This document shows, piece after piece, positions 13,255-51,766 of a DNA stretch of 64,000 nt (position 1 is its first letter; each line of letters opens with the position of its first letter). The notes under the pieces were generated by a model. That model was not told the origin of the DNA. It searched no databases and was given only the letters and a program-made list of their open reading frames with translations. The position numbers and the translations under genes were made by a program. Source of the stretch: Octopus sinensis (Eukaryota); the NCBI RefSeq assembly GCF_006345805.1, contig NC_042997.1, positions 126,356,001 through 126,420,000 of the forward strand. Reading direction: 5' to 3'.

Positions 13255-13314
13255 ACATTTAGTATTACACAAGAGGATCATGAATTGTTTATAAAAGATG
13301 AACTCAAGAAAAAG
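13255..13314 (+). CDS. BAIAP3: Internal coding exon (60 nt, phase 0/0) of a Munc13-4-family (UNC13D/BAIAP3-like) gene; TFSITQEDHELFIKDELKKK
   Basis: Acceptor ttttattctactttcag|ACA, donor AAG|gtacgt, open in frame 0, in non-repetitive sequence. The peptide aligns without gaps to human UNC13D [20 protein letters not shown] and BAIAP3 AFGTSLEEHTEAIERVRKAK (F..(S/T).E(E/D)H). The 60-nt phase 0/0 structure matches UNC13D exon 4 as recalled. The symbol is family-level; orthology is not established. Confidence 0.78.
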
Positions 13315-13468
13315 GTACGTCTTTTAGACAAGAGCAAATATTTTGAGGAGTTTATTTTTACAATCTTTTGTTTTTTTTTGTTGTTGTTGAATTCTTCTGT
13401 TTTTAAAGAAAAAATAAATTAAGAATCTAGTTTTTTTTGGGTATTTTTTGTACCGCTTTTATTTTTAT

Positions 13469-13482
13469 GTTGCCATGGAAAC
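13469..13482. promoter_or_regulatory. Candidate RFX X-box GTTGCCATGGAAAC
   Basis: 13/14 match to the palindromic X-box GTTGCCATGGCAAC; the reverse strand GTTTCCATGGCAAC fits GTHNYYATRRNAAC. It lies in unique sequence 155 bp downstream of the 60-nt exon. Confidence 0.45.
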
Positions 13483-13589
13483 AAACCTTCATCTTTATAG
13501 AATCAATAACTCTAACATGTTTGTTGTAAATCAATAAATGATATTTGTTATGGCACTGGGATTATGGCAGGGAGAATGAATGTACTACT

Positions 13590-13885
13590 GTTGCTGCTGC
13601 TGGTGATGATGATGATGATGATGATGATGGTGGTGGTGGATGTGGTGGTATTGATGGTTATTGGGATGATGATGATGATGATGGGAACTGTGATAGGAAT
13701 GATAATGACAGTGAAGATAGTGATGGTGATGATGATGATGATGAGGTCAATAATGATGATGATGATAGTGATGACAGTGTTGTTGTTGTTGGCAGTGTTG
13801 ATGATGATAATGATGATGGAGATAATGGGGTGGTGGTGGGGGATGATGGTTATAATGGTGGCAGCGATGGCAATGATGGTAGATT
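13590..13885. repeat. (GAT/GGT)-rich low-complexity tract
   Basis: Seen directly; source of the poly-D/poly-M ORFs. Confidence 0.9.
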
Positions 13886-14699
13886 AAGGAATCAACAAGG
13901 AATGATTCTGAGCACATTTGAAGAACTTTGGAATCAATCAGCTTTACAGAAATTTCGATAAAATTTCTTCCCACAATTTTATTTATTTATTTATTTATTT
14001 ATCCATTTATTTATTTATTTATTTATTTATTCATTTCTATAACTGAGTGTTCCTTTTTATCATAGGTTTATGGTTGAAATTGTTCCCCCCACATTCAATA
14101 GAGGAACATTCCCAGAAGAAGCAAATAATTCTCAGAGGCCTTTCATATAACTTAGTAAATACAAAAGACAAAAGCTGAAGACAGATGTGCCAATAGAGAT
14201 AATGCATGTACATGTTCTGAATAGATTAGCATAAAGTTTTCAAGACATTTTTCCTTTATGCTAGTCATCCAATGAAGTTCCATTTTTGCATTCAGTGATT
14301 TGCTATGTCTCTCCAAACATTTATTTTCTGTTACAATATCTTGCTATTATATTACCAATAGATAGCATTTGATTTCCATGAATCGTTCAGTCCCTTGTAG
14401 ATTACACAGCACAAATGTTTAAGGAGCTTGATCCATGCAGAAAAATTTAGATGACAAGAAAAACAAAACACACAAAAAACCCCCCCAAAAACAAACAAAA
14501 GAATAAACAAAAATTTGAGTATTCGATTTTTTTTAGAAGAAAATACAAAGGTATAAGCACGATACTGTTGTTGTTGTTATTGTCATATTTTCATTGTTTT
14601 TGTTTTTTGTTTTCTATGGTGATTGTTAATGGTATTGCTGTTATTCTTGTTGTTGTTGCTTTTGTTGTTGTTGTTGTTGTTGTTATTGCAGCTTTGTTT

Positions 14700-15182
14700 T
14701 TCTCTCTTCTGTGGTGATTGTTGTTGTTATTGCTAACTTGATTGTTATTGGTATGGCTGTCGTTGTCGTTGTTGTTGTTGTTGTTGCTGATGTTGATGGG
14801 GGTGGTGAAGACAAAATATATTTGACAATGACGATGATGACGACAACGATGATGATATTGTCGATGGTGGTGGTGGTGATGATGATGATGATTATGACGT
14901 TCATGTTGGTGATGACGACAGCAATGACAATAATGATGATGATGACAATGATGATGATGATGATGATGATGATGATGGTGGTGGTGGTGGTGGTGGTGGT
15001 GGTGGTGATGATGATGGTGATGATGACGACGATGATGATGACAATGATGCTGATGATAATGATGATGATGATGATGATGACGATGATGGCAATGATGATG
15101 ATGACGACAATGGTGGTGGTGATGATGATGACGATGATGATGATGATGATGATGGTGATGGTGATGGTGGTGGTGACGATGA
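14700..15182. repeat. (GTT)/(GAT)/(GGT) trinucleotide tract
   Basis: Seen directly. Confidence 0.9.
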
Positions 15183-15274
15183 TGATTTTATTTTCTATGA
15201 ATACAAATTGTATTATCGGAAGAAGTAAGATTCTATATTCCACTTTGGTGCACCAAACAGCTAAAGGAACAATA
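15183..15274 (-). repeat. 92-bp module, inverted copy of 7217-7308
   Basis: Reverse-complement alignment; both ORF-track translations contain TNCII(R/G)(K/R)SKILYSTLVHQTAKGTI. Confidence 0.85.
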
Positions 15275-15449
15275 GCAAATAAAATATTGATAACCCTTCA
15301 AAAGTTTTCATTACACATGTGTACACACTACACATTGTCTAAAACACGTGTATGCACATTCACACAAACATTTTTTTTTTATTAGCTATATCTAATATTT
15401 GTGTATGTTTGCTTGTCCTTGTTTGTTTGTATATATTTATTTGTGAGCT

Positions 15450-49544: not shown

Positions 49545-49870
49545 TAAAGGCTCCCCTTCAGTCACAAATGACCATAAGATTGCATCAAGAATATTCTCCT
49601 CCAAGGCACCAGTCTAGGCAAGTTTATTTTTGCGGAAGATCAGCAGTCCCCCAAGTATATCAATCTCCCCTCTCTGCACAATCAATGTTGTCCAAGGGAA
49701 AGGCAAAGGCTGACACAACTTGGCACCAGTGACATTGCAACTCACATCTACAGCTAAGTGAAGTGGAGCAATGTGAAATAAAGTGTTTTGCTCAAGAACA
49801 CAACAGGCAGCTTGGTCCAGGAGGCAAAATCACAACCTCATGATTACAAGCCCGATGCTCCAACCACTAT
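49545..49870 (-). mobile_element. tRNA-derived SINE family E
   Basis: Reverse agtggttggagcatcgggcttgtaatcatgagg...gtgttcttgagcaaaacactttatttcacattgctccac. Confidence 0.65.
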
Positions 49871-50329
49871 GTCTTTCAGTTTTTCCTGTATTAAATCCGT
49901 TCTTTGGTCAGCCTGGGGCTATAGTAGAAGACATTTGTCCAAAGTGCTATTCAGTAGCACAGAACCTGGAACCATGTGGTTGGGAAGCAAACTTCTTCAC
50001 CATACAGTCATGCTGGGATTTCATCATAAGGTTTCTTTGTCTCTTGTTGATTTTGAATCAATTATGATCAAATGTGTTCCATTAAAACTACATTTATTTA
50101 ATGAATAATTAGTTGAGACAACACTCAAACTTTATTCAATCAAAACCATTTAAACATCCATGAACAAAACTACAGACAAAATTTCCACTTAATATTGATA
50201 TTGTATGCATGTATGTATATATGTATGCTTATATGAATGTATGAATGTGTGTCTATATGTATGTGTGTGTGTATGTATCTGTGTGTGTGTGTGTGTGTAT
50301 ATATGTATGTATGTATATATACATATATT

Positions 50330-50672
50330 GGCACTTGTGCCGGTGGCACGTGAACAAAACATTCGAGCGAGGTCGTTGCCAGTGCCGGTGGACTGGCTCC
50401 TGTGTAGGTGGCATGTAAAAAACACCATTTGACCGTGGCTGTTGCCAGTACTACCAGACTGACCCTCGTGCCAGTGACACGTAAAAGAACCCACTGCATT
50501 CACGGAGTGGTTGGCGTTAGGAGGGGCATCCAGCTGTAGAAACTCTGCCAGAACAGACTGGAGCCTGGTGCAGCCATCTGGTTCACCAGACCTCAGTCAA
50601 ATCATCCAACCCATGCTAGCATGGAAAGCAGACGTTAAATGATGATGATGATGATGATGATGATGATGATGA
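50330..50672 (+). mobile_element. RTE 3'UTR copy
   Basis: Ends ccaacccatgctagcatggaaagcagacgttaaat(gat)n. Confidence 0.88.
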
Positions 50673-50747
50673 TATATAAATTATTATTTCTAAGTCTCTG
50701 AATGAGAGACATTCAGTAACAGTACTCTAGAGTAAAGATTATTTGCC

Positions 50748-50887
50748 AACATAATGTGGCAATTCTGCTTAGGACGAATGTTACTGTTATTTAGTCCCAG
50801 GAAGATGATATTTAGCCCCTAGAGATGATGTTTCCTTGAGCTAAATAACAGTAACATTCATCCTAACCAGGACTGCTACATTATGTT
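50748..50887. mobile_element. Small foldback/MITE, 47-bp arms
   Basis: 50748-50794 pairs with 50841-50887, 5 mismatches by eye. Confidence 0.82.
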
Positions 50888-50889
50888 CA

Positions 50890-51250
50890 ACTTCGGTGAA
50901 ATTTGAATGTAGTGGCAGATGAAATATTGCTTAGAATTTTGCCTGGCGTGCTAACGATTCTGCCAGCTCACCACCTTAATAATAATAATAATCATAATAA
51001 TAATAATAATAATAATAATAATAATAATAATAATCCTTTCTACTGGAGGCACAAGGCCTTGAAATTTTGGGGGAGGGGATTAGTTGATTACATTGACCTC
51101 AGTGTTTCACTGGCTCTTAATTTATCGACCCCGAAAGGATGAAAGACAAAGTTGACCTCAGCAGAATTTGAACTCAGAACGTAGCAGCAAACGAAATACC
51201 GCTAAGCATTTCGCCCGGCGTACTAACAATTCTGCCAGCTCACTGTCTTA
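50890..51250 (-). mobile_element. Family B SINE head fragment plus full family B SINE, separated by (AAT)n
   Basis: ctgccagctcaccacctt (about 50960) and gacccgaaaggatgaaagacaaagttgacc...ctgccagctcactgtctt. Confidence 0.8.
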
Positions 51251-51690
51251 ATCATCATCATCATCGTTTAACGTCCATTCTCCATGCTAGCATGGGTTGG
51301 ACGTATTAATAAATAATAATAATAATAATATAATATAAAATATAATAATAATAATTATCATCATCATATAATATAATATATTATGTATATATATATAATA
51401 TATATATATATATAATATATATATATATATATATATATATATATGTATATATATATATGTATATATATATATATGTTTATTTGGTCATTGTTTAATGTTT
51501 TGTATGAAAATCTCACCATTGATAATGGGAAAAATATGTTCTCCCCAATCAATTAATTAATCACTTAATCTACTTTCATTATTTTCCATTTTTCCTCAAC
51601 TAATTACATAATTCCATTTTGCAGATAGTTTTTATGTTTGCAACCATTGTCACCAATGTTGCACTGACTCTCTGTTTCTCTTCCTTGCAG

Positions 51691-51766
51691 CCAACTAACC
51701 TTCTTTTAAATGTGATGATTTCTGAAGCCACAATTGATGTACCACGCAAGAACTTTAGAATCAAGG
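51691..51766 (+). CDS. BAIAP3: Internal coding exon (76 nt, phase 0/1) of the same Munc13-4-family gene; start of C2A domain, PTNLLLNVMISEATIDVPRKNFRIK(G)
   Basis: Branch-like CTGAC at 51664, pyrimidine tract ctctctgtttctcttccttgcag|CCA, donor AAGG|gtaaga. Open reading; P-x-x-x-L-x-V-x-I-x-E-A is a C2 beta-1 pattern (cf. [44 protein letters not shown]). It ends in a phase-1 split codon like the human exon and joins in frame to exon 13255-13314. Confidence 0.78.

Follow-up and report, generated by a model that had tools for sequence, protein, structure and literature searches.

Two short exons on either side of a 38.4-kb intron in Octopus sinensis probably belong to a second clade of the Munc13-4/BAIAP3 family

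Two very short candidate exons lie 38 kb apart in a 64-kb stretch of Octopus sinensis DNA (the 64,000 nt analyzed here, referred to as the window), and the question is whether they are parts of one gene and, if so, to which family and which branch of it that gene belongs. In the original prediction, the pair was read as a hidden Munc13-4/BAIAP3-like gene missed by the list of open reading frames. The exons were indeed missed, but for lengths of 60 and 76 nt this is trivial. The following features could be assigned:

13235..13254, plus strand: acceptor of exon A, polypyrimidine tract and AG, atttggcattttattctactttcag (acceptor score with a crude matrix, 4.5)
13255..13314, plus strand: exon A, coding, 60 nt, phase 0/0, encoding TFSITQEDHELFIKDELKKK
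13315..51690, plus strand: intron, GT...AG (gtacgt...ttgcag), 38,376 nt
51668..51690, plus strand: acceptor of exon B, polypyrimidine tract and AG, ctctctgtttctcttccttgcag (acceptor score 9.8)
51691..51766, plus strand: exon B, coding, 76 nt, phase 0/1, encoding PTNLLLNVMISEATIDVPRKNFRIK and G, the first base of a split codon
51767..51772, plus strand: donor of exon B, gtaaga (donor score with a crude matrix, 8.9)

Exon A (ACATTT...AAAAAG) is preceded by ttattctactttcag and followed by gtacgt, exon B (CCAACT...ATCAAGG) is preceded by ctgtttctcttccttgcag and followed by gtaaga, and the two join in frame to a spliced peptide of 46 aa. Both are located in repeat-free islands of ~250 bp that contain no intra-window repeat (13250-13499 around exon A and 51500-51749 around exon B). 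The earlier description of two GT-AG exons in unique sequence that splice in frame was thereby confirmed in positions, phases and surroundings. When open AG..GT segments were scored with the crude splice matrix, exon B was the top segment of both strands and exon A the third on the plus strand. With 11 segments on the plus and 17 on the minus strand reaching summed scores of 12 or more, the splice signals by themselves do not exceed what chance could give. It is because of the homology tests, and not the splice signals, that the pair stands well above chance.

A 20-column exon profile of 12 relatives was compared with all six-frame fragments of the window, and exon A was the sole significant match (17.4 bits, E 8.5e-4, profile positions 2-20; runner-up 8.3 bits), with match boundaries that coincide with the AG and the GT. 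A weak resemblance to exon A at 10312-10404 (8.4 bits, E 0.39) was rejected as a chance match that has no splice structure and reads through the K/P boundary. By profile score, exon B ranked first among 1,320 phase-compatible candidate next exons, and no alternative inside the 38,376-nt intron scored better. Exon B by itself gave just 6.0 bits on the profile, and exons A and B spliced together gave 36.7 bits, compared with 28.0 bits for the next-best spliced candidate. When the 46-aa peptide was compared by phmmer with 151 family representatives, E values of 4.8e-6, 3.8e-5 and 4.3e-5 were obtained for Owenia P0179, Solemya P0187 and Gigantopelta P0207, respectively. Peptide residues 2-33 align without gaps over the splice junction, which lies at the homologous site in the relatives, and the ungapped alignments reach 12-13 residues into exon B. 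With the "unc-13 homolog D-like" proteins of annelids and molluscs, the identity is 45-47% over 31-32 residues; 15/32 positions agree with Owenia and 14/31 with scallop P0271 (HEFFIKDELSNKP versus HELFIKDELKKKP). On the profile of the second family clade (clade 2) the peptide scored 35.5 bits, whereas the maximum over 20,000 shuffles was 10.7 bits. The segment ahead of C2A and the first C2A strand, for which the family pattern is [AVI]F.[VI]...H, 11-12 residues, KP and ...L.V.[VI].EA, also line up with the peptide in the family's order and spacing.

Exon-sized profiles succeeded where full-length profiles did not: with full-length clade and family profiles run against six-frame fragments, the exons stayed at noise level (~1 bit). 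A tblastn search of the window with 270 family proteins likewise gave noise, with a best E of 0.022 at unrelated places. No Pfam family, the C2 model included, matched the 46-aa peptide at E<=10; a fragment of this size is too short, and its signal comes mainly from the segment ahead of C2A, outside the C2 domain. In a word-indexed search of a collection of 5.8 billion protein clusters, no protein shared three 5-residue words with the peptide, and the splice is therefore without confirmation from any annotated cephalopod protein. The scallop relative itself shares only two 5-mers with the 46-aa peptide.

The exon layout is conserved in relatives. In the scallop relative, a 60-nt phase 0/0 exon (L001:35532-35591) is followed by a 70-nt phase 0/1 exon, and tiger UNC13D likewise has a 60-nt phase 0/0 exon, encoding AFHMGPEEHQQLLQKVQKLE (L002:2378-2437), directly ahead of a phase 0/1 exon of 67 nt (22 residues and G). 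Intron positions and phases at exons A and B are identical in the window, scallop and tiger, and exon B starts at the same position. The structure given for UNC13D in the original prediction, a 60-nt phase 0/0 exon and then a phase 0/1 exon, is thus the one present in both species, and the proposed family membership is supported by this layout together with the ungapped 35.5-bit match. Judged from the alignments, exon A is the conserved segment immediately ahead of the C2A domain and exon B the first C2A beta-strand with part of loop 1. The two are very likely consecutive internal coding exons of a plus-strand gene of the Munc13-4 (UNC13D)/BAIAP3 family, belonging to its second clade, with a 38.4-kb GT-AG intron between them.

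Two exons are visible of ~30 expected. Neither a motif search nor a six-frame profile nor a splice-constrained search of positions 1-13254 recovered the upstream 'HPLG' exon (Y..LL..LLHPLG...P.DL..H), which is most likely located before the start of the window. The downstream DPYC...WNEEF exon, which carries the D133 position, was not found in the window by motif (SDPY, WNEEF), six-frame profile or splice-constrained enumeration, and tblastn and full-length profiles revealed no other family exons elsewhere in the window. All other exons (remaining C2A, MUN and C2B) would lie outside the window, those for MUN far downstream of it. The 38,376-nt intron is filled with dispersed repeats and microsatellites and also holds the decayed remnant of a reverse transcriptase, whereas the homologous intron is far shorter in scallop (313 nt) and tiger (85 nt). 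Repeat insertion would have enlarged it ~100-fold relative to the scallop intron. Intra-window repeats make up 46% of the window, and an assembly gap occupies 52670-52769. The G+C content of the window is ~36%; this and the best matches, which are to lophotrochozoan proteins, are consistent with an octopus origin. Searches of the window for tRNAs and Rfam families found none.

Only two short exons are open to inspection and no annotated protein contains them; exon B is divergent, the loop-1 Asp position is not conserved and the flanking exons were not seen, as might be the case if these were true family homologues in a decayed or silent copy, either a pseudogene or a duplication relic. However, both frames are intact, the splice sites are near-consensus and the best in the window, and both exons sit in repeat-free islands amid repeat-rich DNA with the ancestral phases kept. 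Decay is not expected to preserve frames, splice sites, islands and phases together, and the absence of flanking exons is expected with such large introns in a 64-kb window. A decayed copy is considered unlikely.

The members of the family are related over their full length, e.g., P0187 aligns to human UNC13D query residues 51-1074 with an E of 1.8e-66. The split between clade 2 and the other family members appeared in 50 of 50 bootstraps. Clade 2 comprises Mizuhopecten, Solemya, Saccostrea, Gigantopelta, Nucella, Owenia, Lingula, four echinoderms, Ptychodera and Pycnogonum, that is bivalves, gastropod, annelid, brachiopod, echinoderms, hemichordate and sea spider. None of the vertebrate, insect and nematode proteins that were recovered falls into it. 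In scallop and Gigantopelta, its members are labeled 'protein unc-13 homolog D-like' at NCBI, and scallop has one gene per clade, P0129 (canonical BAIAP3-like) and P0271 (clade 2). The assignment of the peptide is based on 32 aligned residues, over which it scored 35.5 bits on the clade-2 profile and 23.5 bits on that of the canonical clade (clade 1). The top five pairwise scores all went to clade-2 proteins, in the order Owenia, Mizuhopecten, Solemya, Gigantopelta, Apostichopus, and the block HE.FIKDEL..KP, which the peptide shares, is seen in clade 2 only. When the clade alignment of 11 sequences was used for a profile search, only 21 proteins were obtained, with no cephalopod among them.

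The peptide would instead derive from a canonical BAIAP3-like orthologue if weight were given to its clade-1 score, which is reached in the same register, to the 10/32 identities with scallop BAIAP3-like P0129 and to the confinement of the signal to 32 residues. This is very unlikely, since the clade-2 score is 12 bits higher, although the clade-2 profile has fewer sequences, and both the five best pairwise matches and the HE.FIKDEL..KP block point exclusively to clade 2. That the exons are chance open segments with splice-like flanks and no gene is effectively refuted: an AT-rich 64-kb window has ~15,000-18,000 open AG..GT segments per strand, several with comparable splice scores, tblastn and full-length profiles gave only noise and Pfam was blank on the peptide, but the window-wide profile scan picked out exon A, exon B came first in two independent rankings, the alignment crosses the junction without gaps at a score that no shuffle approached, and scallop and tiger keep the exon length and phase.

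With the clade-2 assignment, the earlier view that the gene is not the conserved canonical orthologue was upheld. The further proposal of a lineage-specific, fast-evolving paralogue and an expanded octopus family did not hold, as the matching clade spans molluscs to echinoderms and a pycnogonid and scallop has both branches. The peptide matches a widespread bilaterian clade, and the locus is therefore ordinary gene content. Old paralogy accounts for the low identity to human UNC13D. No literature on BAIAP3 in octopus or on the phylogeny of the family was found. It is conceivable, though somewhat doubtful as a whole, that an ancient second family branch on which little work has been done has its cephalopod orthologue in this gene, with N-terminal exons absent from every public predicted protein and a C2A lacking a loop-1 Ca2+ ligand. 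The product would then be a priming factor in which the first C2 domain has ceased to sense Ca2+.

The C2A domain of human UNC13D binds Ca2+, and D127 and D133 are its loop-1 aspartates (PMC3328385). In the ungapped alignment, the position of human Asp127 is occupied by Lys here, an assignment that hinges on aligning without gaps a loop that is 2-3 residues longer in this sequence. The C2A encoded in part by exon B may have weakened or lost Ca2+ binding, as apparently in some mollusc relatives. In the Solemya and Gigantopelta clade-2 proteins, Pfam identified just one C2 stretch, which is C-terminal. By homology, the product would have a C2A-MUN-C2B architecture, bind SNAREs and membranes and act in the tethering and priming of vesicles.

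Exons of 60 and 76 nt lying 38 kb apart can thus be picked out from sequence alone, and clade-specific exon profiles combined with conserved intron phases make such tiny exons checkable without expression data. Biologically, the gene is one further member of a family already annotated in other molluscs. Its location in the less studied of two old bilaterian family branches, the ~100-fold intron growth compared with scallop and a first C2 domain that may be Ca2+-insensitive are mildly interesting, and none of them touches a long-standing question.

The closest known proteins are the mollusc and annelid members of clade 2, Mizuhopecten yessoensis P0271 (XP isoform X1), Solemya velum KAL5016347.1, Gigantopelta aegis XP_041349496.1, Saccostrea XP_062567283.1 and Owenia fusiformis P0179. 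They share the register of the peptide, including HE(F/L)FIKDEL..KP and L.(A/L)N(I/V), and mollusc members likewise have a degenerate C2A loop. As in the clade-2 scallop gene, a 60-nt phase 0/0 exon is followed by a phase 0/1 exon opening at Pro after Lys, but exon B exceeds its scallop counterpart by 6 nt. Exon A opens with Thr where the clade-2 relatives have Val, Ile or Leu, and the loop-1 Asp retained in scallop and Owenia is aligned with Lys. Invertebrate BAIAP3-like proteins (e.g., scallop P0129, Bombus P0137, Tachypleus P0136 and C. elegans P0274) belong to the same family and have the same motif register, but match the peptide less well than clade 2, with 8-10/32 identities. They carry the canonical EEKPP...L.V.V.EA..LEAKD.NG.SDPYC and a clear Pfam MUN match, which is absent from clade-2 proteins at E<=0.001. 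Human UNC13D falls in the other clade, and local alignment with it recovers only 3/9 identities (peptide residues 2-10). Nevertheless, both intron positions and phases, the F.(V/I)..E(E/D)H motif and the K/P exon boundary region are shared with vertebrate Munc13-4 (UNC13D).

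The coordinates, flanks and in-frame joining of the two short coding segments in the original prediction were confirmed by direct reading:

13255..13314, + strand: exon A, 60 nt, flanked by ttattctactttcag (5') and gtacgt (3'); product TFSITQEDHELFIKDELKKK
51691..51766, + strand: exon B, 76 nt, flanked by ctgtttctcttccttgcag (5') and gtaaga (3'); product PTNLLLNVMISEATIDVPRKNFRIK and base 1 of a split codon

The intron between them measures 38,376 nt. Intra-window repeats make up 46% of the window, and each exon lies within an island of ~250 bp without a repeat elsewhere in it. 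All open AG..GT segments were scored with a crude splice-site matrix derived from general consensus frequencies. With this matrix, exon B had the highest acceptor-plus-donor score across both strands and exon A ranked third on the + strand. Since several unrelated segments scored in the same range, the splice signals alone are no proof.

Simple searches returned little. No protein in a word-indexed collection of 5.8 billion clusters had three 5-residue words in common with the spliced 46-aa peptide, no Pfam family matched the peptide, 270 family proteins compared with the window by tblastn yielded nothing above noise, and full-length profiles performed no better. For exons of 20 and 25 residues such null results are expected, and they are therefore not evidence against the exons. 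With human UNC13D as query the word-indexed database retrieved only mammals; 150 diverse family members were obtained by an exhaustive search of 50%-identity representatives. Their N-terminal alignment, from the pre-C2A segment into C2A, showed the pattern [AV]F.[VI]...[ED]H, 11-12 residues, and KP(P)...L.V.V.EA..L..KD.NG.SDPYC. When the window peptide was compared with 151 family representatives by phmmer, it matched proteins of the annelid Owenia fusiformis (P0179, E 4.8e-6), the bivalve Solemya velum (P0187, E 3.8e-5) and the gastropod Gigantopelta aegis (P0207, 'protein unc-13 homolog D-like', E 4.3e-5), all named by exact look-up. Each match covered peptide residues 2-33 at the homologous place and without a gap, and thus ran straight across the proposed splice junction. 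Identities were 15/32 with Owenia and 14/31 with both Solemya and the scallop Mizuhopecten yessoensis (P0271, 'protein unc-13 homolog D-like', also named by exact look-up), in which the aligned stretch reads VFEVDRDEHEFFIKDELSNKPKCLQANITVLEGDGL versus TFSITQEDHELFIKDELKKKPTNLLLNVMISEATID in the window.

The matches were then weighed against chance. An exon-A profile of 20 columns, built from 12 relatives and no window sequence, was run against the full six-frame set of 3,907 window fragments and gave one outstanding match at 13258-13314 (profile positions 2-20, 17.4 bits, E 8.5e-4), compared to 8.3 bits for the second best. Exon A was thus recovered with no coordinates chosen beforehand, and its ends coincide with AG and GT. 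A weak exon-A-like stretch at 10312-10404 (+), MIYGIQTCFIVSGDSHFLFVPHNLTHSPVKF, scored 8.4 bits (E 0.39) against the clade profile, had no splice structure and is probably a chance match. For exon B, 1,320 candidates were collected on the + strand downstream of exon A (AG, open frame 0, GT in phase 1, 46-130 nt). The segment 51691-51766 ranked first by the exon-B profile, with 6.0 bits, a weak score by itself; joined to exon A, this segment reached 36.7 bits versus 28.0 for the next-best candidate, and it was also first in the independent splice ranking. Against the profile of the second family group described below, the window peptide scored 35.5 bits, while the maximum of 20,000 shuffles was 10.7 bits.

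The exon layout given for UNC13D in the original prediction, a 60-nt phase 0/0 exon followed by a phase 0/1 exon, proved correct; it is present in tiger UNC13D and in the scallop gene. In the homologous region of the scallop locus L001, a 108-nt exon (NENIYRGLLRSLLHPLG...HLRE) precedes the 60-nt phase 0/0 exon (L001:35532-35591; VFEVDRDEHEFFIKDELSNK, ccag|...AAG|gtacag), which is followed by a 70-nt phase 0/1 exon starting with CCG AAG (PKCLQ...) and then by an exon that supplies the rest of the split codon and encodes ELGDPYC. Tiger UNC13D (L002) has a 60-nt exon, AFHMGPEEHQQLLQKVQKLE, and then a 67-nt phase 0/1 exon of 22 protein letters plus G. Both intron positions and phases are identical to those of the window exons. 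The homologous intron, 38,376 nt in the window, is 313 nt in scallop and 85 nt in tiger. Gapless phmmer matches, profile scores and matching introns together uphold the assignment to the Munc13-4/BAIAP3 family.

Based on pairwise scores, the family representatives fall into two groups. Vertebrate UNC13D belongs to the first, together with invertebrate 'BAIAP3-like' proteins from scallop (P0129), horseshoe crab, spiders, bumblebee, crayfish and nematodes; the second is made up of 'unc-13 homolog D-like' proteins from bivalves, gastropods, Owenia, Lingula, four echinoderms, Ptychodera and Pycnogonum. In a neighbour-joining tree of 997 columns this split, as well as a mollusc subgroup, was found in 50/50 bootstraps; the UNC13D/BAIAP3 family divides into two bilaterian-wide clades. 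No vertebrate, insect or nematode protein was seen in the second clade among those recovered. The scallop has one gene of each group. As the window peptide scored 35.5 bits against the second group versus 23.5 against the first, the window gene and the canonical BAIAP3-like gene are paralogues, as had been suspected. This paralogy is older than the protostome-deuterostome split, and nothing in these results points to the octopus-specific expansion that had also been proposed. Neither the word-indexed searches nor the 50%-identity representative search returned a cephalopod protein of clade 2. It is concluded that the exons are real, that the gene family is known and that the branch is known though little-studied.

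No flanking exon was identified within the window. Its + strand lacks the HPLG exon as well as the DPYC and the invariant WNEEF motifs. The surroundings of the exons contain several further elements:

40615-41178, + strand, continuing in other frames to ~41376: ORF matching Pfam RVT_1 (reverse transcriptase, E 1.4e-10)
21217-21584, 24320-24688 and 30653-31007: two tandem copies per site of a ~184 bp unit (TATTTCTTTACTACCCACAAGGGGC.AAACACAGAGGGGACAAACAAGG...)
25408-25652 and 43712-43909, + strand, and 48891-49068, reverse orientation: arrays of a 66-67-bp unit (…GGTGGCACATAAAAAGCACC…)
51812-51870 and elsewhere, e.g. ~29730 on the - strand: element ...tcattggactgtggccatgctggggcac.gcctt..., recurring across the window
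52670-52769: assembly gap of 100 N, true size unknown, 900 bp past exon B
59428-59855 and 60655-61082: a pair of arrays (2 x 219 bp each), 1.2 kb apart, with the same consensus unit and a TRF score of 744 for both

A short exon could be hidden inside the gap. The RVT_1 region, with ...AFIDIEKAFRRVP... and ...YADDL... in nearby frames, is a decayed retroelement within the 38-kb intron, on the gene's own strand. The ~184 bp unit is a dispersed SINE-like family, in which ARAGORN found no tRNA-like part, and the 66-67-bp unit is a second dispersed repeat family inside the intron, present in both orientations. The pair of 219-bp arrays points to a local duplication of recent date, or possibly to one introduced by the assembly. 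The ...tcattggactgtggccatgctggggcac.gcctt... element begins ~45 bp past the exon B donor; repeats thus come very near exon B, yet none reaches its splice sites. Microsatellites are very dense throughout the window (76 TRF rows with a score of at least 80; long ATG/CAT, AAG, ACT, AT and AG runs). At 14711-15385, 43949-44635 and 61381-62034, long 'ORFs' (180-230 aa) coincide with microsatellite arrays and have no Pfam match.

Exons A and B encode the pre-C2A segment, the first C2A strand and part of loop 1. From what is known of the family, the full protein would be a C2A-MUN-C2B tethering/priming factor. At E<=0.001 the Pfam MUN model gave no hit in the clade-2 proteins, which still align with human UNC13D along their entire length. 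In the Solemya and Gigantopelta proteins the single C2 domain recognised by Pfam is the C-terminal one, C2A going undetected, and Gigantopelta has an insertion of ~80 residues in C2A loop 1. In Munc13-4, the Ca2+-dependent SNARE and membrane interactions are differentially mediated by the two C2 domains, and mutations of the loop-1 aspartates D127 and D133 (C2A) and D941 and D947 (C2B) were made to impair the predicted Ca2+ binding (PMC3328385). Together with the Pfam pattern in the relatives, the residue at the D127 position makes a weakened Ca2+ site in the window C2A plausible, although this reading depends on a short loop with 2-3 extra residues in the window: in the ungapped alignment this position is Lys40 in the window peptide, whereas it is Asp in scallop and Owenia.
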